This document shows, piece by piece, positions 15,958-62,463 of a stretch of DNA of 64,000 nt. Position numbers and translations under genes: made by a program. Position 1 is the stretch's first letter. Each line of letters starts with the position of its first letter. This DNA comes from Setoptus koraiensis. Its lineage: Eukaryota; Animalia; Arthropoda. The DNA is taken from the NCBI GenBank assembly GCA_048013815.1, contig CM106586.1, positions 22,506,001 to 22,570,000 of the forward strand, given 5' to 3'. Under the pieces are notes generated by a model, which had not been told where the DNA came from, did no database searches, and worked only from the letters and a program-made list of their open reading frames with translations.

Positions 15958-17160
15958 ATGGACAAAGATCCGAGTGGTAAGCTATTTCCAACACTAAAGA
16001 ATGATTGCATTCTACGTGCAGCAAGTGGTCAATCGACTGAGTACGTGCCTGTTTGGATAATGAGACAAGCTGGACGTTATTTGCCAGAATTTAGGGAATT
16101 ACGTTTAACCAACCCCTTCTTCAAGATTTGTGAAACTCCAGAATTGGCATGCCAGGTGACGCTGATGCCAATTAAAAGATTTGATCTGGATGCTGCCATC
16201 ATATTCTCTGATATATTGGTTATACCTCAGGCGCTCGGCATGGTGGTTGAAATGACTCACGAGGGGCCTAAATTTCCAAAACCATTGAGAAGCATTGACC
16301 AAATTAAATCTGATTTGAAAGCAGACGTAGACATTGCAAAGAGACTGAGCTATGTTTACGAGGCCATAACATTGACTCGTCATTCCTTGGAAGGGAAATG
16401 TCCTCTCATTGGTTTCTCCGGGGCGCCATGGACTTTGATGGGATATATGGTAGAGGGTGGTGGTTCGAAGACCATGTCGATAACCAAACGTTGGCTCTAC
16501 CAGTATCCTACCGAGAGTCATAGCTTACTCAAACTCATAGGAGACAAAGTTACTGATTATCTATTGCAACAAGTAAAGGCAGGAGCCCAGATGTTGCAGT
16601 TATTTGAATCAAGTGCCGAATATTTGAACAGAGATCTTTTCACCGAATTTGCATTGCCGTACATACTCGATATCTGTAAGAATCTAAAGTTACGCTGCAA
16701 ACAAGAAAACCTGACCACTGTACCTATATGTGTTTTTGCAAAAGGTGGTCATTTCATCATAAACGATCTGACTAATCTGGACGACGGATTAGTTGATATC
16801 GTTAGTTTGGATTGGACCATGGACCCAGTTTTAGGTAAAGATTGATTGTACAGAAATTGAGATACTTTTGAAACTCTTAGAACATTCATAGTCTAACTTG
16901 CTACTCTTTATGAAATTACTTAAGTGCGATCGAATTCCAACGGCAAGATTTGCCTCCAAGGCAACATGGACCCATGTGCATTATATGCGCACCCAGATCG
17001 AGTGAGATCTTTGGCTAGAAGCATGATAGATCAGTTTGGAACGCAAAGTTACATAGCGAATTTAGGTCATGGCATCTATCCCGACGCAAAGATTGAATGT
17101 GTTCAAGCACTCATCGAAGAGGTCCATTCATACTCTCGCAAGAAAAATACCGAATCATGA
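15958..17160 (+). CDS. UROD: Uroporphyrinogen decarboxylase, about 370 aa; exons 15958-16834 and 16925-17160
   Basis: PVWIMRQAGRYLPE, DAAIIFSDILVIP, IGFSGAPWTL, QGNMDP and YIANLGHGIYP motifs. The 90-nt intron 16835-16924 has a CTAAC branch point and an AAG acceptor, the first AG after the branch point. Confidence 0.95.
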
Positions 17161-21828: not shown

Positions 21829-23620
21829 TTAGAACGGTGGCATGATCGGAGGTAATGTTTTTTTACTTTCCTTCTCATATTCTTCCAATAAACTACTGAT
21901 TGTAACAATACCCGGTTGTGGAGGTGTCGTCGGAATCAGTGTAAATGGAGGGAAGGTGAATGGAGCTATCGTTCTTGGCTCATCTGTTGCCACCGTTACT
22001 ATAGATGGCATAGTGGTGATGGGCTGTTCGGTAGGAGTCGGATCTGTTTTAACCGGTGTCACTTCGTTTGTATCATCATCATCCTCATTAACGCCAATAG
22101 TGTCGCCTAATTTTCCGAATTTAATTTTTGCTTTCAAGCCTTGACCAACCATTCGATCATTTGCTGTTATTATAATGACAGCTCGAGGTCCATCCGACTT
22201 TAAAACTGTACCAGGTGCAATATCAGTTCCGCAATAAATATTACCATCGTACATGTCACTGTTTTTTAGCCTGATTTCAATTGTTTCGTTGAAGCACTTG
22301 TTTATAACTTTGGTTCCCGCCTTGGTGAATCGTGGAGCAAATTCGAAGCCTTCAAACTTTATAGATACTGTTTGACTAGGTGATGGTGCTCTGATATCCC
22401 ACATACAACTTTCGTGAGGTGCCAGACGTTGAGGGAAATTAGGTGTTTGTATCCTTCCTTCTTCTTGCACTATACCGCCACATGGTAAAGGCTCATAGTA
22501 ATCAGACCTCAGTACAGTTTCACAATGTGGTCCTTGAGTATTTGGAGGACAATCACAGCTACACTGTCCCTGAGAAGACTTCAAGTAACCACCGTTCTGA
22601 CATTGAGCAGTGTTTGAACAACTAGCTGAGCAAGAATAGATGAAATTGGCTAGTTTTCTATCTCTAAAACTCAATGGGTAGTTCTTACTGAGAAATCTTT
22701 GATGCGCAGGGTCTATAGCAACAATGGTGCTCTTCTCGAATAACTCTTTACTGAATGCCCATTGTGGATATTGCATAGTAGATGTATAATCATAAGGTAC
22801 ACCATGATTGAGATCGCTTTCTTTGCGAAATTGGATAAAATAACCCGGCAAGACATTGTTCCATGCGATATTAATGTGCTGATCCCTATCTGAGCGACTT
22901 TGTTCATGGTAAAATCCAATGACATGGCCTATCTCATGAACGACCACATTCAAGTTTGCACACCCGTGACCTATAGAGACATCTTGGCCTTGTCCCAATC
23001 TGTCCATCTGCCGGCCAACTAATGACCAGCAGCCTGGAGTATCTGATCTAAATCGTACAAAAAAGTAGTCTTGGGGTTGTCGTGGTCGAAACTTAATGCA
23101 GGTATGCTGTTGCCAATGCTGCATGGCAGACTCGATTACGTTCATTTCCTGTTGAGTAATTGCTAATGAAAAATTTTGAACAGTTTCCAAAGAATTATCA
23201 GTATTACAAATCAATGCAGTAATTTCATTTTTCGCTTGATATATAGAACATTAACTTATCATCTTAAAGCTAACAATTATACTAACACTCGTGGTACGAA
23301 TAAATCACTTCTCCATTAGGCCAGTAGACGCCGTTTTCTGTTGCTTTTCTGTGAGTGTAAACACTTTTAGTTGGAGTCACAATATCTCCTTCAATAATCT
23401 TCTGACCGTCTGGTGTTATCCTCGGATTTGCCCCACCAAACATGTTATATTGAGCTATGAAACTATCGTCTTCAGCATAATGTGAATTGTTACTTAAACT
23501 TGTGGCGCTAGCTTTAGTAATCGCTATTGAGGAACTTTCAACAAGATTCAAGAGATTCGCTAGTGACAATAGAGCCAATGATATTAAAAATTGATAGTTG
23601 ACTAACAGACAATTCTTCAT
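21829..23620 (-). CDS. Astacin-family zinc metalloprotease (signal peptide, prodomain, astacin, EGF, CUB, Pro/Thr-rich tail), about 555 aa; exons 23620-23287 and 23162-21829
   Basis: HEIGHVIGFYHEQSRSDRD zinc motif, STMQY Met-turn, EGDI prodomain motif, CQNGGY EGF and CGG...CxW CUB. The 124-nt phase-1 intron is 23163-23286 (GTTAGT...CATTAG). Confidence 0.92.
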
Positions 23621-29760: not shown

Positions 29761-30432
29761 GCCTCATTCTCACAAGTTGTAGCGCTCGAAACAGACGCCG
29801 GTTGTACTAACTTTCGCCCGGTCAGTGCATTCGGACCTCTGGATTCGGACCCCACAATCCAAATGCGAGGTGTGCAACCAGAGGTCAATGGCGGCTTTAT
29901 GCCGGCGCCTCTACATCTCTGTTTTGGCACCCGCAAACGTCTGATCTACACTCACAACTCTTGTCCACTCTTGTCAGACTGATGATGAAATTCGTTTGAA
30001 TTGTGCGCGTTATTGAAGCTCACACGCGACAATGCACACAGTGATCTCATGCACGATCTGTGCTTGTATCGGCTGCACTGTACTGGTATGATTTAGAAAA
30101 TGCATTGTGGAAGGCAGCGAAGCTTCCACTGTAGGGCACGAGCGACTTGATTGTTACACCCCATAGCATAAACAGTGGAAAAGGTACCAATGGCTTCATG
30201 CACCCCTGTACTACGTAATCTAAGCACTGTTTATATGTACTGCGTGTACTGTGTCCCAAGTACAGCGAAAATACCACTTTGAAAGGACGGGCGGACGGAC
30301 GGACGGACGTAAAGAGTGATGAAGCGAAAGTCGTCACTTGGTCTCCATTCTCGGCGTTCATCGGATCAATTAAACAATAATCGTTCCACTAACAACACCA
30401 CTAAAAAAAGCCGATCTAATAAATCTAAGAAA

Positions 30433-31695
30433 ATGCAACTATTAGCCAAGCTAACGATTGAACATTTGAAGGATGTTATACCTAGCAAACGCGTCCTCAT
30501 TAGAGTCGATTTCAATGTTCCTATGAAAGACGGCAAGATAACAAATAATCAGCGCATTGTTGGGGCGCTCAAAACAATTCAATATTGTCTGGAAAACAAG
30601 GCAAAATCCATCGTCATTATGTCACATTTAGGCCGTCCCGATGGGCAAGCAAACCCCAAATTTAGCCTCAGGCCAGTGGCTGACGAAGTAAGCCGATTAC
30701 TCAATCGCAATGTTACATTCTTAAGTGATTGTGTTGGTCTAGATATCGAGGATGCTTGCAAAAACCCACAAGATGGATCTGTGATTCTATTAGAAAATCT
30801 CAGATATCACATTGAAGAGGAGGGCAGCGGTGTCGATGAGTCAGGCAAAAAAGTCAAAGCCGACCCAAAGGCGGTGGAACACTTCAGAAAGTCCTTAACC
30901 TCTCTAGGGGACATATACATCAATGATGCGTTTGGCACTGCACATAGAGCTCATTCGTCCATGGTCGGAATTGATTTACCACAAAGAGCGGCCGGATTCC
31001 TCATGAAGGCCGAACTAGACTATTTCGCTAAAGTTCTCAATAATCCATCAAGACCTTTCGTGGCCATCTTGGGAGGTGCTAAAGTCAAAGATAAGATACA
31101 ATTGATCGGCAATCTATTGAATCAGGTGAATGAGATGATAATAGTCGGAGGTATGGCTTTCACCTTCTTGAAAGTTCTACACAATATGGATATAGGTACT
31201 TCACTGTTCGATAGTGAAGGCGCTACAATCATAGAAGAGTTGATGTCTAAAGCCAAAAGCAATAATGTCAAGATTTGGTTACCAGTGGACTTCATAACAG
31301 GTGATTCATTTAGCGAGACAGCTAAAGTCGGCGAGGCAACCGTCGAGTCAGGTCTAGGAAAAACGATGGGTCTAGATTGCGGAAAAAAATCCATGGAGTT
31401 GTTTGCCGATCCAATCAAGCGAGCTCAAACGATCCTATGGAATGGACCGTGCGGTGTTTTCGAGTGGGACAATTTCGCCAGTGGAACTAAGGCAATGATG
31501 GATATGGTGGTAGCTGCCACTGAACGTGGGTGTGTGACAGTTATTGGAGGTGGCGACACTGCCACGTGTGCTGCCAAATATAATACCGAGAAAAAAGTCA
31601 GTCATGTTTCCACCGGTGGTGGAGCTAGTCTCGAACTGTTAGAAGGGAAACAATTACCTGGTGTGTCGGCGTTATCACCTGCACCTAGTCATTAA
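30433..31695 (+). CDS. PGK: Phosphoglycerate kinase copy 1, intronless; an upstream in-frame ATG at 30319 would add 38 basic residues
   Basis: [65 protein letters not shown] and [14 protein letters not shown] motifs. Confidence 0.98.
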
Positions 31696-31896
31696 ATATA
31701 ATAAAGCATGTTAAGTATACAAGCATGAGGGAATGTTTATTCTAAACTTTGATTGATCCGAATGATAGTTGAGAAAGTTTAAACATTTATGTTCGATAGC
31801 TAGTCTTGACAATCGGGGTCATGTTCGTCATTTTTTCTTGGAAGAAGATAAAATTAGTGTCTGAACACTGAGATTAGCGTAGTTTCTGATGTTTGG

Positions 31897-32016
31897 TCAT
31901 AGGAAGTAGCTTTGTCTGGCTTGGTTTTGATATGAACGGTAATATTTAAGCGCCAATGGTAGGCTGGGTTGGTGGTGAATGAGATTTATATTACAGCAAA
32001 TTGTCTAATATTTGTC
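31897..32016 (-). pseudogene. Truncated, frameshifted remnant of the SPSB SOCS-box C-terminus
   Basis: Translates TNIRQFA / [30 protein letters not shown], versus [40 protein letters not shown] at 34167-34290. It carries a 4-nt deletion relative to the intact copy. Confidence 0.85.
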
Positions 32017-32293
32017 GTTTATCCAGTGTCAATTGTTTGGTACAAACTGATAACTTGGGGCTGTCGTGAACGAAGCGATCTTGTTACGAATAATTTGAGT
32101 GTGCATAGGCGTAGAACATTTTCAACACTCGCTCCAACAAAGCTCTTAACGAAATCAAAAATAGACCTTCATCAAATGTCCGACTCGAGGTAGGTGATGT
32201 TTTGCGGTGACAAAATTCAGAATTTAGGAAAAAAAATTAGAAATAGATGACGAATAGAAGAGAGATGAATTCTCCCATTTTCAAATATTTAGC

Positions 32294-32299
32294 TATAAA
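32294..32299 (+). promoter_or_regulatory. Possible TATA box of the signal-peptide PGK gene
   Basis: TATAAA about 120 nt upstream of ATG 32417. Motif match only. Confidence 0.2.
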
Positions 32300-32416
32300 C
32301 TGAGGCAATATATGGGCAGAGCCACTTGAATCGATTTTTGTCGCCAATTTGAACTATTGAAAGAAATTTCTCCATATATTTTACATAACTTCGAATCGTG
32401 TGCAACTGGAAATACA

Positions 32417-33949
32417 ATGAAAGTGGTTGCAGCAGTCTTACTATTCGCAATTTTTTGCGTGGTTGCCTCATCAACCCTAGTTGAAAAGTTAAAAAGCAAA
32501 TGCAACTGTTGCTTTAAGCCCTCTCTGACCCACGAAACTCCCGATGAACAGCAATGTCCAGAGTCGAAAGAAAAACTTGATGAAGGTAAAGACGAAAAGA
32601 AAGAGGGACTGGTGTATAAAATTTTCGATAAGCTGAAGAACAAAAAATTCCGAGACAAATTAGTGGAAAAGAGCAAATCTAAGAAAATGCAAGTATCATC
32701 CAAGCTAACGATTGAACATTTGAAGGATGTCATACCTGGAAAACGCGTCCTCGTTAGAGTCGATTTCAATGTCCCTATGAAAGACGGCAAGATAACAAAT
32801 AATCAGCGCATTGTTGGGGCGCTCAAAACAATTCAATATTGTCTGGAAAACAAGGCAAAATCCATCGTCATTATGTCACATTTAGGCCGTCCCGATGGGC
32901 AAGCAAACCCCAAATTTAGCCTCAGGCCAGTGGCTGACGAAGTAAGCCGATTACTCAATCGCAATGTTACATTCTTAAGTGATTGTGTTGGTCTGGATAT
33001 CGAAGATGCTTGCAAAAACCCACAAGATGGATCTGTGATTCTATTAGAAAATCTCAGATATCACATTGAAGAGGAAGGCAGCGGTGTCGATGAGTCAGGC
33101 AAAAAAGTCAAGGCTGACCCAAAGGCGGTCGAACACTTCAGAAAGTCCTTAACCTCTCTAGGGGACATATACATCAATGATGCGTTTGGCACCGCACATA
33201 GAGCTCATTCGTCCATGGTCGGAATTGATTTACCACAAAGAGCTGCCGGATTCCTCATGAAGGCCGAACTAGACTATTTCGCTAAAGTTCTCAATAATCC
33301 ATCAAGACCTTTCGTGGCCATCTTGGGAGGTGCTAAAGTTAAAGATAAGATACAATTGATCGGCAATCTATTGAATCAGGTGAATGAGATGATAATAGTC
33401 GGAGGTATGGCTTTCACCTTCTTGAAAGTTCTACACAATATGGATATAGGTACCTCACTGTTCGATAGTGAAGGCGCTACAATCATAGAAGAGTTGATGT
33501 CTAAGGCCAAAAGCAATAATGTCAAGATTTGGTTACCAGTGGACTTCATAACAGGTGATTCATTTAGCGAGACAGCTAAAGTCGGCGAGGCAACCGTCGA
33601 GTCAGGTCTAGGAAAAACGATGGGTCTAGATTGCGGAAAAAAATCCATGGAGTTGTTTGCCGATCCAATCAAGCGAGCTCAAACGATCCTATGGAATGGA
33701 CCGTGTGGTGTTTTCGAGTGGGACAATTTCGCCAGTGGAACTAAGGCAATGATGGATATGGTGGTAGCTGCCACTGAACGTGGGTGTGTGACAGTTATTG
33801 GAGGTGGCGACACTGCCACGTGTGCTGCCAAATATAATACCGAGAAAAAAGTCAGTCATGTTTCCACCGGTGGTGGAGCTAGTCTCGAACTGTTAGAAGG
33901 GAAACAATTACCTGGTGTGTCGGCGTTATCACCTGCACCTAGTCATTAA
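32417..33949 (+). CDS. PGK: Phosphoglycerate kinase copy 2 with a 90-aa N-terminal extension beginning with a signal peptide, 510 aa
   Basis: ATG 32417 gives [19 protein letters not shown], then a Cys/Lys/Glu-rich segment, then the complete PGK in the same frame from Met at 32687. Confidence 0.93.
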
Positions 33950-34166
33950 ATGTAATAAGGCATGTTAAGTATACAATATTAGGGGATGTAAATTGTATCA
34001 GATATTTATTCTAAACGTTGATTGATCTAAATGATAGTTGAGAAAATATAAACATTATTGTTTAATAGTTAGTCTTGACAATCAAGGACATGTGTTGTCA
34101 CTTCGTCTTTAAAGGAGATAAAATTAGTGTCTGAACACTGAGATTAACGTAGTTTATGAGGTTGTG

Positions 34167-35108
34167 CTATAGGACGTAGCTTTGTCTAGCTTGATTTTGA
34201 TATAAAAGGTAATCTTTAAGGGCCAATGGTAGGCTCAGTCGGTGGTAGATGAGATTTATATTTGCACCAGCAAATTGTCTAATATTCGTCCTACAAATAT
34301 CTTTCAACGGCTTGGGTTCGGGGTCCAAACCATTAAGGTAACGTAACGTTATTTCGCAGTGTCCCCACACCGCGCTCACTATTGGATATAGTTTTTTGCC
34401 CTTGAGTCCGCGAAATGCAACACCCAAATATTGGCCGTCAACAACAAAGCTCATGGTGCCCTCGTCCATGTCTAACACTAACAAAAATTTATCTGGCACA
34501 ATGAAGGTCTCGTCTGGATTTAAGTGGCTAGGATAGGTGACACTGGGCTCATTTTTGTAGTCGTGATACAGCTTGTTCCGGCCCAGGTCCCAGCCCCACG
34601 ATTCTTTGTCGGCCCCAACTAAAATCTGGTAACCATTACGATGTAAAGTAGCCTGGCTCGTTGCCACCCCGATCACGGCGTGGGTGCCGCGCTGCTGCGA
34701 AGCCCAGGTAATTTCCCAGACGTGCAAACCGCGACTGTAGCCCTGTTTGCCCCTGATACAATCGGTACTTTGAGCAACAGGGTGCCTGTGCAGCGTGAGC
34801 TTATCACTTTCTTTGATGAACACGTTCAACGATCTGTCTTCTGGGTTCCACGAGTTCTTTTCGGCCACGTCCAGCGGACAGGGCGGCATGTCCAGTATGG
34901 CGTCTAGTCTGGATGGTCTTTGTAGATCAATCATGGTTTGTGAGGATGTGAAATTTTGAAATGGCGACAAAGAGTTGATATCACTGTGATGGTTGTTGTT
35001 TGTGAGATGGGGTTGATGTTGTTGTTGGTGATGATCTATTGTAAGTTGACTATTGCCGCGATGGCTGTGGGGCCGTTGATGGTGTCGTCGTTGCGATGGG
35101 GCCGACAT
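34167..35108 (-). CDS. SPSB: SPRY-domain SOCS-box protein (SPSB1/4, gustavus-like), copy A, about 313 aa
   Basis: [54 protein letters not shown] and SOCS box PLKDICR...[12 protein letters not shown]. The first ATG is 35108, with an in-frame stop near 35284 upstream. Confidence 0.95.
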
Positions 35109-36803
35109 GTGAATGTGATAATGAGGGCGTGTTGTTGACTTAATAGTTGGGCCTAACACTGTTGTGGCTGGCGGACGATATGATTGTTTGTGAATAAAAT
35201 CAAGACTGATGACGATGTGAGATGTGCGTATTATTTTATAAGTAATTGAGAGGCGAGGGTCAAGAGCGAAAGTTGCACACGATTAGTGGAGTCGCATTTG
35301 GTTGGTGTGTGTTCGACTAGCTAGCCTCCAATATCGAATGAGTGGTGCTCATTATTTGCGACATGACAACAACATGTCGTCTCATGTACACCGGCTGTCC
35401 GAACTGGGCACGATTTGTGCCGTACACAGCCACACATACTATGCCAGTTTGCCACTGTGAAAGGCGGATAGCTTAGCGCATTGCGCACGCTTGCCATGTA
35501 CATGTGCCAAGAGAATGCGTGATGTCTGAACAGTGTGCCGCGTTGCGTGCCTTCGGCAATGCAATGAGTGAGCGGCCGATGGGAGGAACGAAGCAGAAGG
35601 GCTGAAAATAGGCGCACAGCGACGCGGCGGCGGCGGCGAGTCAGTTTGTTCGAGTTGGCCACCACTTGTTGCCACTGTCGGTGCTAATTACAACAGATGA
35701 TCGATAATTGATAATAATCGATTCTTTTCACATTATAAAACTGATATTAACAAGCGAGAGAATCTTCTCGAAGATTCTTTCATAAAGCACCTAGAGACTC
35801 CTCGTGCATTAGGTAATACGCACGCAAGCGAGTACGAGCCACGCCGTCCCGACTGCTCGAACGCTGTCTCGAGATGCTGCAAGTTTTGCTCATTTTGGCG
35901 CCCAAAAGCCAAACAACACTGGCAATTGCGCACCATTTACGCCGTCTATACAATTGTTAGGTGGGCCGCTTAGCGTCCCATTTGCGGCCAGCCTCAGTCG
36001 TCGGCGCGATATACGCGATATGCAATATATACATTATGCAAGACTATCGTGCCCATATTATTATTATTAACTATTAAATATAATGCCATTATAATACATA
36101 TTGTATATTAGCGACAACGACAACGTTAACAACAACAGCAACCAGAGCGGCCGCGGCGACGTAATTACAATTATTGTGTTGTTACTGTCCAATAAACAGA
36201 ACCGATTGCACCGTTTTTGATTGATTCAAGGACACACACGCTAAAATAAAATGTCGGCGGTAGCGAAACGCACAAGGGATTGAATTACAATGGCGGACAT
36301 TATTTGCAGGTTGTTGTCCGGCAATGGTTATTATTATCGTTATGTATTGTTATTATCTATGCTTAACCTCTTTGAAGAAATGTCAATGCTAATCACGTCA
36401 ATCTTTGAACGGCAGCAAGCGGCGACATTGACTGATAACAGCAGCCAGTTGGGCCAATATTACTGTATGTAATGTATTACTACATTACATGCACTACCAT
36501 TATGACCATTGTCGTTGTCGGACCAAGGAATAGATTAATATTATTGCGATACAATAAATAATAATTTGTGTGTTAAATGGTAAATCAATCCCACCAGAGA
36601 ACACACTGTTACGGACCTACTTCTTAGGTGTACAAACCTAACAAAGGCAACCTTACATAATAACATGCTTGCAAGTTGCATTAACTCGGCTAGCGTATCG
36701 TACACATGTATAAATGTTTACGCATATAGTAATATTCGGGCCAAGCCGTCTCAACGCACACACACACACCAGCAACAGCGAAACTCTACAATAATAGTTA
36801 TAA

Positions 36804-44983: not shown

Positions 44984-46510
44984 TTAAAACATGTAGCTTT
45001 GTTTGGCTGTGTCTTGATATAGGAGGTAATCTTTGAGGGCCAATGGTAGGCTTAGTTCGTGGTAAATGAGATTTAATTTTGCGCCAGCAAATTGTCTAAT
45101 ATTAGTCCTACAAATGTCCTTTAGAGGCATAGGCTCTGGGTCTAAACCGTTCAGGTATCGCAACGTTATTTCGCAGTGTCCCCACACCGCGCTCACTATT
45201 GGATATAGTTTTTTGCCCTTGAGTCCGCGAAATGCAACACCCAAATATTGGCCGTCAACAACAAAGCTCATGGTGCCCTCGTCCATGTCTAACACTAACA
45301 AAAATTTATCTGGCACAATGAAGGTCTCGTCTGGATTTAAGTGGCTAGGATAGGTGACACTGGGCTCGTTTTTGTAGTCGTGATACAGCTTGTTTCGGCC
45401 CAGGTCCCAGCCCCACGATTCTTTGTCGGCCCCAACCAAACTCTGGTAACCATTACAATGTAAAGCTGCCTGGCTCGTAGCCACACCGAGCACGGCGTGG
45501 GTGCCGCGCTGCTGCGAAGCCCAGGTAATTTCCCAGACGTGCAAACCGCGACTGTAGCCCTGTTTGCCCCTAATACAATCGGTACTTTGAGCAACAGGGT
45601 GCCTGTGCAGCGTGAGCTTATCACTTTCTTTGATGAACACGTTCAACGATCTGTCTTCTGGGTTCCACGAGTTCTTTTCGGCCACGTCCAGCGGACAGGG
45701 CGGCATGTCCAGTATGGCGTCTAGTCTAGATGATTTTTGTAGATCAATCATGGTTTGTGAGGGCGTGAAATTTTGAAATGGCGACAAAGAGTTGATATCA
45801 CTGTGGTGGTTGTTGTTTATGAGATGGGGTTGTGGTTGTTGTTGTTGTTGACCTATCGTAAGTTGACTATTGCCGCGATGGCTGTGGGGCTGCTGCTGTT
45901 GGTGCTGTTGTTGTTGGTGTGATGGGGCCGCTGGGTGGCCGTTGGGCGCCGACATGTGAATGTGGTGGTTGTGACGATGGTGTGGTGGTGGCTGGTGAGG
46001 TGGTGTGATTGTTTGCTGGTGCTGATTGTTGCTATCAATTACTAAACTGTGACTGGTTGTTTGCGATGACGCTACATTGCCCATGGAGGTCGCTGCCGGC
46101 TGATTGGGATCGTGATTGGGATTAAATAAATGATGGCCAGCCATGGGGGCCTGGTGATGGTGACTATTGGGAGACATGGAATTGGGGCAACTGTGTGTTG
46201 TGTTGACTTGAGGTTGCGATTGAGGTTGTTGCTGTTGCTGTTGTTGATTCTGATGAGTATCTTGTTGTTGCGATTGTCTCAATTGTTGTTGTTGCTCGCT
46301 GGTGGCGCTGTTTTGCTGTTGTTGCGGCTGTTGTTGCGGCTGTTGTTGCGGCTGTTGCTGGCTAAACGACGACGATGTTGATCTCGCTGTTGATTGTTGA
46401 GACTGATGCTTCGCACTAATAGTCTGGTGTCTATTATTTTTAGTGGTTGAATGGCGAGGATCAACAGTAAAAAGTTTAGTCAGATACGTTTTAAGCTGGC
46501 TAGTCTTCAT
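44984..46510 (-). CDS. SPSB: SPSB/gustavus-like protein, copy B, 508 aa, with long Q/H-rich N-terminus; alternative start MGNVAS at 46084
   Basis: Same SPRY and SOCS-box motifs as copy A; the core is nearly identical to copy A at nucleotide level. Confidence 0.95.
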
Positions 46511-56304: not shown

Positions 56305-59300
56305 TTACATTAGATTAATCGCTTGTGTATCTAACCATGCTGCACAACAATTAATGACGTGCTTTAAATCAATACGGATCGCTTCATCAAGTATTTTTCT
56401 AACAAGATCCGGACGGTTTAATTTGATTGCTAATAGTTGAGCATTACTCAATTGTCCTAGCTCAATGTAAAAATTCATCTTGGTTTCCTGACCGGATATT
56501 AGCTTAATCAACGCCATAACATAATCAGGTTCTTTGCAACTTCTGACAGCCGCGCTAACTATATCATCGCGTATTAACTCTGATTTTTTATCAATGCTCG
56601 CCTTAGTGGGTATTGTATCGTATTTGTTTAAATCCAATTTAATCTCAGATTCGATACACTGAATGAATTGTTCCACTCGTTGAACAAGCTCCGAGCCCTC
56701 ACACAAAACAAATATTCTTGCGGCTGTTCTCAATACTTTCATTCGATCCAGTTCGTTATCATCTATAAGTTGATTAGCCAGTGCTAGTCCCTCACTAGGA
56801 TAGTTGCCGTAATAACAAGCCACAAGGGCCGCAAATAGGGTCCGTCTCGTTAACGACTTGTCAAACAATGTCACCGGGTGGTCGAGCGACTCGGCAACAG
56901 GTGACGAGCCATCTGCTGTTGAGTCCTCGAGTTCTATTCCTTTAAGACAACCGATAACGTTATTTGCACTAAAACTTTGAGTTACATCAATTTGAGTACT
57001 AATTACCTTGATCTGTCTAGTGACATCGTTTTCGGACATATTCATCATGCGAGGGCGGTGAATCGATGTTTGATTCAAGTCGCTCAGATATTGCTCACAA
57101 TGACGCCTAGCTTTCACCAGATGATGCAAACGACCATTTAGATCGCGATAATTGATGATTGGTTTCTTCAAGAAGAAGCAATTAATTTGAGTAATAGCTG
57201 CCCGCAAATGATCATTCATATTTTCCTGCATGTAATAGAGTAAATTGTGCATTTGTTTTCTGGCACAATATTTGCAAACAGCCAATTTGTATTTCCATAA
57301 GCGATTCTGTGTTGGGTCCAAAGCAGTCATGTCATTAAGGAGTTCATTTAGGGAACCTTTGGCCGCTGCTTTCATAAAGACATCTTCAAAGAACAATTTA
57401 TTGTAGGCCTCGTTAGTTGCATTGTTGGACTCCGTCACTAGAAATTCAATTGTTTTTCGCCACAGTCCATTGGATACAAAAAATCTGACGTAATCCTCTG
57501 AGCTGCCATAGAGATCAAGATAATATAATGCTTCAGCAAATATTGCTGGCTTAGCGGATGGAAGTGACAAATCTTTCGGTTGATTGGTATCACTAAATTG
57601 TCCATGCTCAATAGCGTAAATACGGGCGGCTAGAGATCGTTGCTTGTCTTCTAATTTGACTATTGCACTTAAAATCTCACTAAGTAGCTTACTTTGAGTC
57701 TGATTTATTTGATCGCTGGCTTGTCTAGTTCTTGTGAAACAATGCTTGAACTTTTCTCTGGCCTCGGGAAAACGGCGATTCTTCAGACATTGCATAGCCC
57801 ATGTTCTCCACACAGCAGGCACGTCTAAGCCAAATTTCATTGCAATCTCTAAAGCCAAATCAAATCGCTCCATCTCCAGTAGCTTCTCTTGTAACCTAAC
57901 TGGCGAGTGATCTGGAGAGAACGCTATAGATAGAATAAATTTATCACAGCAATTATTATTGACCAGTGTTCTAATGACGTCCACTTGCGACAACATCCTA
58001 TCGAGGATATTCTTTGTTTCACTACGCTTATCACCCACATTCACTTTGGCTGATGTTAACAAGGATTTTATCATGTTGATTATCAGCCCACTATCTGTCT
58101 GATTCGACGTGAGTGTCTCAAATAGTGGCTGACATACGGAATCAATTAAAAATTTGCATCCTCTACTCTGATCTGAGTGCAATCTTAATATGGTCAAGCA
58201 TAATGATACGCTCGGAGCAGTGTCATAATAGAATTCTTTGCGAATTTCCTCGTTTGAAGCCAAATCACCTTCAACATCATTTGCGTTCAAAAGCCACATA
58301 AATGGTCTACTGTACTGGAAATTTGACGAAGTAGGACTACTCGCTGATGTGCTGGCCTCTATTATCTTGGTTTGCGAATAACAATCGCAACAAACTCTAA
58401 CGGCGTTTCTATTAGATACTTCTCGCACCAATAAAAACTTATTTGAACAGTTGGAGCATACTACTCGACCACAGCGACGACAATGGTGCCTTCTGTTGAG
58501 CAAACTGAACTTTTCGATTTTGCAAACCATACAATAAGAGACTTTCCAATCTGGAACCCATTCACTTTTGTCGGGCACATTGCTAGGCATAATAAATTCT
58601 TGCTCAACTGTTGAACCAATGCCAGCACGAGTGGGGTTGTTTGGCTCAGTAGACGATATTACTGTCGTCTCTGATACAGCATCTATATTTAAATTGGTAC
58701 TATTGGATTGACTCGTCGTCCCTTGACTGGTGTTACTATGCTGGAACGAGTGCTGTTGATTGAAAGAATGACTCAAGTTTGATGGCGGCGAGTCGCATAT
58801 CTGTATATCTACTGCCTTTTTGCAATATTCCTCTATCAGATTATCATACCTGGCTATTTTGACACATTCCTTCAAAGATTCATACTCTATATTCATCAGC
58901 ATTTGTTCTATAATTAGTTTAGGTTTTGTCAGCAGATGCATGTAAGAGCTTATCAGATCATCCGGTAGCAATTGGATTAGTTTGATGCCCGTTATACAAT
59001 CCCGATAATGTACAATCTCCTCTCTATTTAGAACTTTCTCGCACCGGTCAATGATATACTGAGCTAGGCTTCCTTTGACCTTCAAAGAATCAACTCTGGG
59101 TAAAACTCTACTAACGAGTCCTACACACGCGTAAGGCGTTGATACGATAGTATCCATGAAACTTATTGCTTCATCCAAAGCATCTTCTTCGCAAAGAGAT
59201 AACAAGACTAGCTCTTCTTGTAGCTCTTGACAATCTGTTTCAAACCCTTTCAGATCTACCCAATTCTTAGCTGATTTGTACTGCTTGCGAGCTTTAAATA

Positions 59301-62300
59301 CAGCCATCATGTCAGCAACAGATAAGCTGTTTCTCGCTTCACGCCACGTTCTCAATCCAGTCAATTTAGCTAACTCATCGTATAGTCTTACTTCAACTAG
59401 ACTGTCATCGAGACGTTTCTTTAGAAAAATGAGATGCTCGTTGCTAACAAGCGATTGTTTAGTGAGATCAACATTCGCTTCTCGAACGTTGTCCAATTTG
59501 AAATTTTTCAAAGTTGAAGTTTGGCCGGAAACCAGCGATCGATGCGATAATTCGTCCAATTGACTGACCTGTCTTTGTTGTTTCGGAGATTTTTGTGATT
59601 TTTGGCTGCTATTCGATGTTACAGATGGATGCGAAGTGAACGATCTCAAACATGATTGTACTGAACGTAGTACGTGTCTGTAGTCGTTGAATGATTCTGA
59701 ATTCTCAATCATGTCGAGTATGAACTGTGCTTTGAGATCAAATTCCTCCATTTGCAGGATATACTTGGGATCGTTGGTTTCTTTAGCTAGATCAGATAGT
59801 ATTGCCCTTCGCAAGGTTCTATAGGATGGAGAAGACTGCACGGTTGGCAATAGTTTGAGTATCTCGTGCATTCTCAGAAAGTTTTTCTCCACCGCATAGT
59901 GCTCCAGGATCTTCATGAAGATATTTAATTGACAAGATAATCTTGGATGAAGACAAGCTGTGACTAATGAAGCTTGATCTACAATTTCAGAGAAGCCAAT
60001 TTTTGACCTCACCAGATCGATGTACTTAAGAAGAGGCGAGTCAGGAGTGAAGGCTTGACTAGGAGTGCTATCGCTAAATATGCCATCTAGCTTTGCATCG
60101 GTATTAAAGCCATCTACCTGCGTGTCTGGAATGCTAATGACCCCGATAATACATAACAACTCTGTCACTATTTTACTATGTGAACGAAAAAACTGAATCA
60201 GTCCCGGGGACCATGACTTCTCCCTTCTCTGATCTACCATATCACTGAGGTCTTCCAAAGACACCCTGGAATGACTAGATGAAGTAGAATAATTCAAATT
60301 AGAAGATTGAGTATGCCCAGTTTTGAGATGTCTTGCGGCGAGGTCGCATAAAGCAGGAGCCATTGCCTCAATCAGTAGATGATTTTCATCCAATCTTGGG
60401 TTATAACTTGATGGAAGATTTGGGCACACAACAGAACATAGAGTGCCTACTAGATCAATCTGAAGCTCACGAGCCAGACCATTGATCTCCTCTGGAGACA
60501 TTCCGTCTTTTAAGACCATAGCACATAATATTGCGGATGGAGAATGATTCAATACAGCAAAATATTGTGTAACTGGGAATTGTCTATTGAAGGACGGACT
60601 TCTTTTGCGACATTCCTCCAAAGTTTCCCCAACTTTTTTCACATAAGACAGGAGGGCAGCTAAGTAGTTAAGCTTATTATCTTCACGTCCTTGGAAGTGC
60701 AGACTGATCTTTTGATAATTGGACATAAGTTTTTTCTGAAGATCGTTCGAGGCACGATGAATATCATCCAAATCAAGCGGTAGTAATGTCAGAAGTTGAT
60801 TATTGAAGTCATTAATATACTCTATGATGGTATTGCTGAGATGAGAACTGTGTATATCTAGATTTCGCTCAATATTGTCTATCCGAGGAGACAAATCGAT
60901 CTCATAATTGAGAGCTAATGTCTTGGACAGACGATAGTTGAGAAAATTATCTTTGGTCTTTGTATCTCCAGAGGATGCGTCAACCAACAAATCCATTATA
61001 TCCAGGAATTTGTTTATAAGCTTCTGAACCATTGGATCAAGGCCATTTGATCCATTGAATTTCTTCTCAAATAGAACATGCTCTCCGATGAAACGTGAGA
61101 CTTCCGCATGAGGACAAGTAGTAATGGAATAATCTAATAGAGTGATACTAGCTTTTTCAGGATTCAACAGTTCAGGATGTTGGGTGAAGTTTTGTATTGC
61201 TTTGAGAATGTCGTCGGAATAAACCTTGGAAATACTTGAAGTATCCTGGGACAGCTTGTGATGTCTTTTACGCAGATTGTTGTGAGATGGAGAGTTTTCA
61301 AGATTGTCAGCAGCGCTAGCGATGTTTGTAGCGGATTTCAAATGACTCGATATAAGCTTCGTCAAATTTTCGTGCAACTCATGAGTTTTTTCAATTAGAG
61401 TTAGCTCTTTCGCCTCGTTTGTGTCTGCTAGTTCAACCTCAAATAGTTTAAGTACTTGACGAGCTCTCGATATCTGGTCTTTGATTAGACAGTAAGTTAA
61501 TAATTTTTTAGGAGGAGCGAGCATGCTAGGAATAATTGAAGTCGAGTCAGCTTGAAGTAGATAAGGCCTTCTAGTTGGTTTCAGTTCATTCTCTATAAAA
61601 CTTGTTGTGGCACAATCAGAATTATCACTAGGTGTGTCAATTATCACAGTGTCTACAGAGCTATGAAATTTAGGTTCGTCATTAATTGTGGAACTGCTAG
61701 CTCTTGTTTGGACCCCAGAACTTTTTAGATCGAGGCTTTCGTTGTACGAATCTTTGTTGTACTCCTCATCAGTAGTATACTTGAATGTAGGCTCAATCAA
61801 ACATGACTGTTCGTCGAGAATACTTTTTGAGCACCATTCTGAAAATTCCATCATAGACTTCAGTCTGGAGATAATGTGCATGCATATTACGTTGCTGGGA
61901 TTACTTTTATCAATAGAGTCATCACTTTGCGAATCATGATATTCCAGAGTCTGTTTGATGAGTGATTCCAAATGGAGATAGTCACTTTCCTGTTCGAATT
62001 TCCCGTTATACAACCTAAACATGAGCGAAATCAATTTGAAGCATTGAGGCATCGACGTGAAGGCTGCGTCATCATAGAGCATATCTCTAATGAAATGTTT
62101 TCTGTCTAGAGCGCCTCTTAGAAAACATTCTCTATAATCGAACTCTTCTTTGCTGTTGAAAATGAAATTGAGTCCTCGTTCCTTGAGTAGTTGCCTCTTT
62201 AGGCGGCCCACTTTGACTAACAAATTTGAGGTGCGTCGACCTAGGATAGCATGATAAAGGAATTGTTTCTTGTTTTGGACGGACGCCTGTTTGTGAAGCA

Positions 62301-62463
62301 CAGAATTGTCACCATGACTCGGCGATTCCTCATAGATTTCGATCAGATCCAACAGAAATTTGTCGTCCAATTTATCGTCAGGTGCATCGAGCAGGTACTG
62401 GTACAACTGCCTCTGATTGGTAGTGTTGTCCGGCCTAATCGGACTTGGAGCCAGTATATTCAT
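56305..62463 (-). CDS. ZFYVE26: Zinc finger FYVE domain protein 26 (spastizin/SPG15), single 6.2-kb ORF; may have an extra 5' exon
   Basis: FYVE finger WVPD...CMVCK...FSLLNRRHHCRRCGRVVCSNCS...RVCCDCY at about two-thirds of the length, then EEIRKEFYYDTAPSVSLC, WRTWAMQCLK...AREKFKHC and DHLRAA, as in the spastizin C-terminus. Confidence 0.9.
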   Translation of the reverse strand: MNILAPSPIRPDNTTNQRQLYQYLLDAPDDKLDDKFLLDLIEIYEESPSHGDNSVLHKQASVQNKKQFLYHAILGRRTSNLLVKVGRLKRQLLKERGLNFIFNSKEEFDYRECFLRGALDRKHFIRDMLYDDAAFTSMPQCFKLISLMFRLYNGKFEQESDYLHLESLIKQTLEYHDSQSDDSIDKSNPSNVICMHIISRLKSMMEFSEWCSKSILDEQSCLIEPTFKYTTDEEYNKDSYNESLDLKSSGVQTRASSSTINDEPKFHSSVDTVIIDTPSDNSDCATTSFIENELKPTRRPYLLQADSTSIIPSMLAPPKKLLTYCLIKDQISRARQVLKLFEVELADTNEAKELTLIEKTHELHENLTKLISSHLKSATNIASAADNLENSPSHNNLRKRHHKLSQDTSSISKVYSDDILKAIQNFTQHPELLNPEKASITLLDYSITTCPHAEVSRFIGEHVLFEKKFNGSNGLDPMVQKLINKFLDIMDLLVDASSGDTKTKDNFLNYRLSKTLALNYEIDLSPRIDNIERNLDIHSSHLSNTIIEYINDFNNQLLTLLPLDLDDIHRASNDLQKKLMSNYQKISLHFQGREDNKLNYLAALLSYVKKVGETLEECRKRSPSFNRQFPVTQYFAVLNHSPSAILCAMVLKDGMSPEEINGLARELQIDLVGTLCSVVCPNLPSSYNPRLDENHLLIEAMAPALCDLAARHLKTGHTQSSNLNYSTSSSHSRVSLEDLSDMVDQRREKSWSPGLIQFFRSHSKIVTELLCIIGVISIPDTQVDGFNTDAKLDGIFSDSTPSQAFTPDSPLLKYIDLVRSKIGFSEIVDQASLVTACLHPRLSCQLNIFMKILEHYAVEKNFLRMHEILKLLPTVQSSPSYRTLRRAILSDLAKETNDPKYILQMEEFDLKAQFILDMIENSESFNDYRHVLRSVQSCLRSFTSHPSVTSNSSQKSQKSPKQQRQVSQLDELSHRSLVSGQTSTLKNFKLDNVREANVDLTKQSLVSNEHLIFLKKRLDDSLVEVRLYDELAKLTGLRTWREARNSLSVADMMAVFKARKQYKSAKNWVDLKGFETDCQELQEELVLLSLCEEDALDEAISFMDTIVSTPYACVGLVSRVLPRVDSLKVKGSLAQYIIDRCEKVLNREEIVHYRDCITGIKLIQLLPDDLISSYMHLLTKPKLIIEQMLMNIEYESLKECVKIARYDNLIEEYCKKAVDIQICDSPPSNLSHSFNQQHSFQHSNTSQGTTSQSNSTNLNIDAVSETTVISSTEPNNPTRAGIGSTVEQEFIMPSNVPDKSEWVPDWKVSYCMVCKIEKFSLLNRRHHCRRCGRVVCSNCSNKFLLVREVSNRNAVRVCCDCYSQTKIIEASTSASSPTSSNFQYSRPFMWLLNANDVEGDLASNEEIRKEFYYDTAPSVSLCLTILRLHSDQSRGCKFLIDSVCQPLFETLTSNQTDSGLIINMIKSLLTSAKVNVGDKRSETKNILDRMLSQVDVIRTLVNNNCCDKFILSIAFSPDHSPVRLQEKLLEMERFDLALEIAMKFGLDVPAVWRTWAMQCLKNRRFPEAREKFKHCFTRTRQASDQINQTQSKLLSEILSAIVKLEDKQRSLAARIYAIEHGQFSDTNQPKDLSLPSAKPAIFAEALYYLDLYGSSEDYVRFFVSNGLWRKTIEFLVTESNNATNEAYNKLFFEDVFMKAAAKGSLNELLNDMTALDPTQNRLWKYKLAVCKYCARKQMHNLLYYMQENMNDHLRAAITQINCFFLKKPIINYRDLNGRLHHLVKARRHCEQYLSDLNQTSIHRPRMMNMSENDVTRQIKVISTQIDVTQSFSANNVIGCLKGIELEDSTADGSSPVAESLDHPVTLFDKSLTRRTLFAALVACYYGNYPSEGLALANQLIDDNELDRMKVLRTAARIFVLCEGSELVQRVEQFIQCIESEIKLDLNKYDTIPTKASIDKKSELIRDDIVSAAVRSCKEPDYVMALIKLISGQETKMNFYIELGQLSNAQLLAIKLNRPDLVRKILDEAIRIDLKHVINCCAAWLDTQAINLM

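Follow-up and report, generated by a model that had tools for sequence, protein, structure and literature searches.

In Drosophila, the gene jingwei consists of a copy of Adh fused to the 5' exons of the duplicated yande gene. A second kind of example comes from cyst nematodes, whose glutathione-synthetase-like effectors are secreted proteins that were born from housekeeping enzymes. In Schistosoma japonicum, gene families that share a core promoter and a signal sequence have been described (PMC3434034). Phosphoglycerate kinase (PGK) itself has extracellular moonlighting forms, a subject covered by reviews (PMC4481411, PMC7409194). Mammalian PGK1 acts as a plasmin disulfide reductase, and PGK is present on microbial and helminth surfaces. 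In addition, algae with secondary plastids have plastid- or apicoplast-targeted PGK, which carries a signal plus a transit peptide; a diatom model is one example (PMC2173943). A limited literature search turned up no animal PGK for which a classical signal peptide had been reported.

Here we describe a locus, probably from a mite, in which the second of two tandem PGK copies is fused in frame to the 5' part of a different gene. The locus lies in the window, that is, the whole 64-kb stretch of DNA that was analysed. As in jingwei, a whole enzyme copy has gained a foreign N-terminal peptide together with putative regulatory DNA, and the parts can be traced to two identifiable kinds of parent: the PGK to the neighbouring copy 1, and the extension with its upstream DNA to a family of small proteins represented by P0121, P0124 and P0125. 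Unlike jingwei, which arose by retroposition, the PGK copy was made by a DNA-level tandem duplication that included the 3' flank. A further difference from jingwei is that the part recruited by PGK carries a predicted signal peptide; what is expected to change is thus the compartment in which the enzyme is found.

The other systems can be compared in the same way. The locus resembles the nematode effectors and the S. japonicum families in that an enzyme fold, or a new body, stands behind a secretory signal and a shared promoter in a parasite lineage. What sets the locus apart is that the enzyme part here is still identical to its housekeeping paralogue, and that its secretion and any host-directed role are putative. 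Like the moonlighting forms, the PGK of copy 2 is predicted to occur outside the cytosol; however, moonlighting PGKs are leaderless and leave the cell by a non-classical exit, whereas copy 2 encodes what appears to be a classical N-terminal signal peptide. The plastid-targeted PGKs likewise have an ER-type signal peptide before the enzyme, but their leaders are bipartite and occur in protists, whereas in copy 2, which belongs to an animal, the segment behind the signal peptide contains Cys, is rich in Lys and Glu, and has its homologues among small secreted proteins. Copy 2 is almost certainly a genuine chimeric gene with a jingwei-type origin, and we put the probability that it is a functional PGK directed by its signal peptide at about 0.55.

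Tandem PGK copies and the fused reading frame

Copy 1 (30433-31695) and copy 2 (32687-33949) are both intronless, lie on the + strand and are spaced exactly 2254 nt apart. Each consists of 420 codons and a stop. Copy 1 has an ancestral-like N-terminus, and the protein of copy 2 equals that of copy 1 from codon 24 on. The PGK Met of copy 2 at 32687 is preceded by 90 in-frame codons (32417-32686), and the whole of 32417-33949 forms a single uninterrupted frame of 510 codons, from the ATG at 32417 to the TAA at 33947-33949. An earlier sequence-only reading had reported this 510-aa frame with its 90 extra codons and had placed the start of homology between the copies at 30421 and 32675. Reading-frame analysis confirmed the frame, and the homology does begin at these positions, 12 nt before the PGK ATG. 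These 12 nt (32675-32686, + strand) form the fusion junction; they are the first nucleotides common to copy 1 and code for KSKK in frame. The stop-free in-frame stretch upstream of the PGK Met amounts to about 110 codons, for which we estimate a chance probability of about 1e-3 in DNA of about 41% GC.

The fusion protein matches PF00162 over residues 106-496 with 485 bits, against a cut-off of 27, and covers profile positions 6-379 of 379. The nearly invariant PGK columns of a 45-sequence alignment are kept. In the AF2 model of the fusion protein, which also used a 45-sequence alignment, the mean pLDDT is 83, and the PGK fold is two-domain with a pLDDT mostly above 90 across residues 100-500. 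From these features, the PGK part of copy 2 is predicted to be catalytically intact. The mature PGK of copy 2 contains no change specific to extracellular life, a point that speaks against the secreted reading.

The repeat extends about 320 nt beyond the PGK stop. The 3' flank of copy 1 (31696-32016) is homologous to that of copy 2 (33950-34290) at 80% identity with 4 gaps, and the copy 2 flank runs into the 3' end of a convergent SPRY/SOCS-box (SPSB) gene (34167-35159, - strand), whose 3' tip was co-duplicated with PGK. On its minus strand, the copy 1 flank holds a decayed remnant of the last ~35 SPSB codons (31906-32016). The two repeat units are separated by about 658 bp (32017-32674). Because the homology between the copies begins 12 nt before the ATG, copy 2 is without any of PGK's own upstream DNA. 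As a side observation, the SPSB gene has a paralogue 10 kb away (44984-46510, - strand); the two are near-identical over SPRY and SOCS, but the paralogue has a long Gln/His-rich N-terminal region that is mostly missing from the PGK-side gene.

The near-identity of the two CDSs, and the fact that short-read contigs break within the repeat, would fit an assembly artefact in which two alleles or a collapsed repeat were laid in tandem. We examined contigs from two independent DNA runs, X2 and X4. They span both unique 5' junctions (29982/30005-30475 and 31846/31857-32607) and also cover intergenic DNA. Given that both 5' junctions occur in separate runs, that the 5' flanks are unrelated and that the 3' flanks are 20% diverged, an allelic or collapse artefact is extremely improbable. 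The only signal-peptide variant in X2 and X4 is 32459 G>A (V15M), a conservative change in the signal-peptide core; its presence in these contigs indicates that the sequenced individual or strain was not the one used for the assembly.

An ORF also lies upstream of copy 1 and in frame with it (30319-30432, + strand), with 38 codons from the ATG at 30319; it is basic, Ser/Asn-rich and without a hydrophobic core. This ORF and the 3'-flank repeat were both absent from the sequence-only reading. A (GACG)n microsatellite (30281-30309) lies directly upstream of the ORF, with a 4-nt length difference at 30288 in one DNA run; its 31-mers also draw unrelated contigs in run X5. In composition, the ORF is like the extensions of related PGKs. 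Among the 30 nearest PGK relatives (P0005-P0034), 27 have open N-terminal extensions of 24-125 residues that are Ser/Asn/Lys-rich, and many of the relatives' extensions begin with a MVDxFCVFD(R/K)VEKK-like motif. This motif is absent from the copy 1 ORF and from all frames within 1 kb upstream.

The nearest PGKs are 75-81% identical and stand on Logan and metagenome contigs that also bear intronless genes. The PGK clade is supported at 100/100 and groups with the two included sarcoptiform mites, Oppia and Blomia (96/93, unrooted). At four of the relatives' loci (L001-L004), the order is UBAP2 (-), PGK (+), an ORF of 980-1159 aa (+) and a fatty-acid desaturase (-), with a single PGK on the contigs seen. 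None of the UBAP2, large-ORF and desaturase neighbours is found in the window; therefore, the PGK pair occupies a different neighbourhood, flanked by a cold-shock-domain gene on one side and by SPSB on the other. Every long gene in the window consists of a single ORF, one of them of 2052 aa. Intron-poor genomes of eriophyoid-type mites have been described in a paper that does not mention PGK (PMC7738191). The source of the window is thus probably an acariform mite with few introns, possibly eriophyoid-like, and the suggested role in saliva hinges on this placement. The single-ORF genes include an astacin-CUB protease (21829-23214, - strand), a lipase fragment at the window edge (7-1038, + strand), URO-D (15958-16845) and the 2052-aa protein, which is FYVE/ZFYVE26-like (56305-62463, - strand).

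Source of the extension and its upstream DNA

The 90-residue extension was searched exhaustively with HMMER against 1.84 billion representative proteins. Three small proteins matched it, P0121 (145 aa), P0124 (176 aa) and P0125 (116 aa), with E-values from 3.8e-12 to 1.3e-4; four further matches were long repetitive proteins that aligned over short stretches only. P0121 was the best (phmmer E 3.8e-12), with 52% identity across residues 1-84 of the extension, and tblastn of P0121 against the window gave an E-value of 8e-21 at 32411-32692. The three proteins are all from one public run, on three contigs (L006-L008). Their alignment spans residues 1-87 of the extension and takes in the signal peptide, the CxxCFK motif and the Lys/Glu-rich helix. 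Common to the extension and its relatives are a hydrophobic N-terminus, a site (A-S-A, S-S-A or A-S-S) with T/I-L/G after it, a C-x-x-C-F-K-x-S block that is invariant, and a Lys/Glu-rich stretch of the DEGKxEKK...KLKDKEFR type. The donor-derived mature segment of copy 2 (32474-32674, + strand; codons 20-86) carries CxxCFK, THET and the Lys/Glu-rich helix, and it is matched both by phmmer and by tblastn with P0121.

In terms of P0121, the extension represents about the first 110 of its 145 residues. The C-terminal acidic/Tyr-rich tail is absent and is replaced by PGK, so the chimera is a derivative of the P0121/P0124/P0125 family and not a member of it. There is only one GT-AG-like site, and the donor homology runs on across it without a change of frame, so no intron need be assumed. 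A derivation of the C-terminal part of the extension from the MVDxFCVFDRVEKK motif of related PGKs was considered and rejected; this part aligns to the donor KLKDKEFR helix.

A word-index protein search with residues 1-95 gave no match, and neither the fusion protein nor a neighbouring gene had a record identical in sequence. A four-sequence profile run against 5.8 billion proteins returned P0121, P0124 and P0125 alone, and a scan of metagenome contigs for relatives of the extension returned none. The donor family thus has a very narrow distribution. In the ESM Atlas, the extension has precursors of small secreted peptides as neighbours, with scores of at most 0.51, a weak lead that we do not count as evidence. 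The exact parental donor locus was not found, either in these searches or elsewhere in the 64-kb window, where tblastn of P0121 gave nothing besides 32411-32692 and blastn of 32000-32690 matched only itself. Judged by its homology, the extension is not a chance ORF, and the donor family is, on these searches, a lineage-specific orphan family of putatively secreted small proteins. The sequence-only reading had called the gene chimeric, with an extension from elsewhere; a source can now be named for it, an orphan family of signal-peptide proteins that shows homology both to the extension and to the DNA upstream of it.

For the upstream DNA, an nhmmer profile was made from 330 nt of non-coding DNA before the starts of the three family members, with coding sequence excluded, and was run over the 64 kb on both strands. 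The sole significant match was at 32128-32210 on the + strand (E 4.8e-8), at an equivalent distance from the ATG. This element belongs to a donor-type upstream region with 5'UTR (32017-32416, + strand), which has no homology to the DNA upstream of copy 1 and also contains a TATA-like box, TAGCTATAAACTGAG, at 32290-32304. The TATA-like block (TAGCTATAAA[C/T]TGAG) stands 123 nt before the ATG in the window and 109 nt before the ATG in L007. By homology, the DNA that separates the PGK repeats (32017-32674) represents a donor-family gene in its 5' half, with upstream region, 5'UTR and 86 codons. Because none of PGK's own upstream DNA is present, any copy 2 transcript should start in the donor-type region.

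The element at 32128-32210 ends TTTTTAG/GTGAG in L006, L007 and L008, and the window has GAG/GTAGGT 17 nt earlier. Instead of a promoter element, this may be a first exon that is non-coding and ends in a splice donor, in which case the TATA-like box would fall in a 5'UTR intron.

The AUG at 32417 has A at -3 and is the first to occur after the TATA-like box. Met91 and the start of copy 1 are preceded by the same 12 nt, and one may ask whether copy 2 mainly supplies cytosolic PGK, through a downstream start or through leaky scanning to Met91. We consider this improbable. PGK-type upstream DNA is missing at copy 2, the upstream AUG is in good context and is the first after the TATA-like box, and the five derived amino-acid changes of copy 2 cluster at its former N-terminus.

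Leader anatomy and read evidence

Codons 1-19 (32417-32473, + strand) encode the putative signal peptide, which aligns with those of P0121, P0124 and P0125. The leader begins with MK as its n-region (+1), continues with a 15-residue hydrophobic core (maximum KD(11) mean 3.31, Kyte-Doolittle) and has A-S-S before T20. The signal-peptide call was made from classical criteria by heuristic computation, together with family conservation. By this computation, the leader has the positive n-region, the h-region and the small residues at -3 and -1 of a classical ER signal peptide, and the protein has no further membrane segment. The n-regions of the relatives have a charge of +1 to +2. Their core is 12 residues long, too little to span a membrane, and Glu or Asn comes directly after it. 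P0121 and P0124 carry A-S-A, a textbook signal-peptidase site, and P0125 carries S-S-A. The short core, the charged or polar residue after it and the A-x-A or S-S-A site suggest that the leaders of the relatives are cleavable signal peptides.

Copy 2 has Val where the relatives have Glu or Asn, and this results in a 20-residue uncharged run (residues 3-22). Such a run, with a Lys-rich stretch and CNCC behind it, might serve as a signal anchor that is not cleaved, so that PGK would be membrane-tethered and lumenal or at the cell surface. In a less likely variant, PGK would face the cytosol and the juxtamembrane Cys cluster would be lipidated. However, the relatives combine the 12-residue core with a charged or polar residue next to it and with A-x-A (P0121, P0124) or S-S-A (P0125), and copy 2 keeps small residues at -3 and -1. 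An anchor is unlikely in our judgement, and a cleaved signal peptide remains the preferred reading of the leader. The mature extension would have four Cys and a net charge of +6; in the AF2 model, the extension is helical at 2-27, disordered at 28-62 and helical again at 63-95. From the signal-peptide anatomy and the family conservation, we infer that the product is secreted, and the fused gene probably routes PGK into the classical secretory pathway. The roles in saliva, host manipulation and redox chemistry that had been suggested for the fused PGK are speculation.

Read contigs were also compared with the locus. Run X1, which we guess to be RNA and which is possibly DNA, is about 3% diverged from the window and gave four short low-depth contigs, at 30333-30534, at 32315-32527 and in two stretches of the SPSB CDS. 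The contig at 32315-32527 begins 21 nt after the TATA-like box. There were no X1 contigs in the intergenic stretches, and none in the PGK body either; given the latter, X1 may be a low-coverage DNA run. Run X5, which may be either RNA or DNA, gave one perfect contig at 32466-32613. No contig of X1 or X5 crosses 32675.

Divergence of the copies and proposed history

The two copies differ at 19 codons. Five of the differences are non-synonymous, all of them within codons 3-23, and 14 are synonymous. Of the latter, 12 lie beyond codon 29, where no other differences occur and where the sequence-only reading had rightly given about 13. By the Nei-Gojobori method, dS is 0.047 and dN is 0 for codons 30-420 (12 synonymous and 0 non-synonymous differences), and dS is 0.14 and dN 0.087 for codons 1-29. 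The co-duplicated 3' flank has a Jukes-Cantor K of about 0.23. Since the synonymous divergence is fivefold below that of the flank, gene conversion that homogenised the CDS of an older duplication is the best account, and the earlier description of a young gene is not borne out by a flank K of ~0.23 against a dS of 0.047 for the body of the CDS.

With neutrality of both copies, the probability that 12 of 12 differences are synonymous would be about 1.6e-8 (synonymous-site fraction 0.22); if copy 2 alone were neutral, it would be about 0.004 by our estimate. This pattern suggests that purifying selection has acted on copy 2 ever since the copies were last homogenised. The idea that both copies are constrained, also put forward earlier, holds for the PGK body, where gene conversion adds to the identity. 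In the PGK tree, the two copies are sisters (100/99); the terminal branch of copy 1 has length 0, so that every amino-acid change is assigned to copy 2. In agreement with this, the relatives have QLLAKL...LIRVDF like copy 1. The changes in copy 2 cluster at the old N-terminus, which is now an internal linker.

These data also bear on whether the chimera is real but a by-product, silent or with no selected function, whose PGK is repaired by recurrent conversion from copy 1. Conversion is very likely, as the dS of the CDS body is five times below the divergence of the flank, and from codon 24 on the mature PGK does not differ from that of copy 1. In addition, the run contigs show no transcript across the junction. 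Nevertheless, all 12 differences that arose after homogenisation are synonymous, for which the estimate with one copy neutral applies. The extension lies outside any conversion tract, yet it keeps its frame, its signal peptide and the family motifs, and the divergence of the flank suggests a considerable age for an extension that stays open. We regard the by-product explanation as rather unlikely, though it is the strongest of the rivals.

We therefore propose a history for copy 2 as a functional PGK directed by a signal peptide. First, a segment that begins 12 nt upstream of the PGK ATG and reaches into the 3' tip of the adjacent SPSB gene was duplicated, and the downstream duplicate was joined in frame to the 5' half of a donor-family gene. 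The donor half supplied upstream regulatory DNA, a 5'UTR, a signal peptide and ~67 mature residues. Transcription would then start from the donor-type region, and the first AUG, at 32417, would open the signal peptide. The product would enter the ER and be cleaved after about residue 19, giving a secreted form with a Cys-containing, Lys/Glu-rich leader on a catalytically intact PGK. The chimera would be expressed wherever the donor family is, and gene conversion and purifying selection would hold the PGK body near-identical to copy 1.

The fused protein may also be viewed as a secreted effector of a plant-feeding mite, or as a gland or seminal product, which we think quite unlikely. As an effector, PGK would leave the animal in active form and might reach the host cell cytosol, where its substrates exist, and the donor leader would set gland-specific expression and delivery.

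The locus offers a clean, datable case in which a housekeeping enzyme appears to have been re-addressed in one step by a module of promoter and signal peptide, with the normal PGK copy remaining adjacent to the re-addressed one. It also shows gene conversion and selection acting jointly on a chimera and its parent. If copy 2 is secreted, it would be a natural test of how the classical secretory route affects a glycolytic enzyme, and a candidate for a secreted factor of mites that are probably parasitic. If it proves to be an effector, no earlier case would exist of an animal glycolytic enzyme that entered the classical secretory pathway through the capture of a promoter and a signal peptide.
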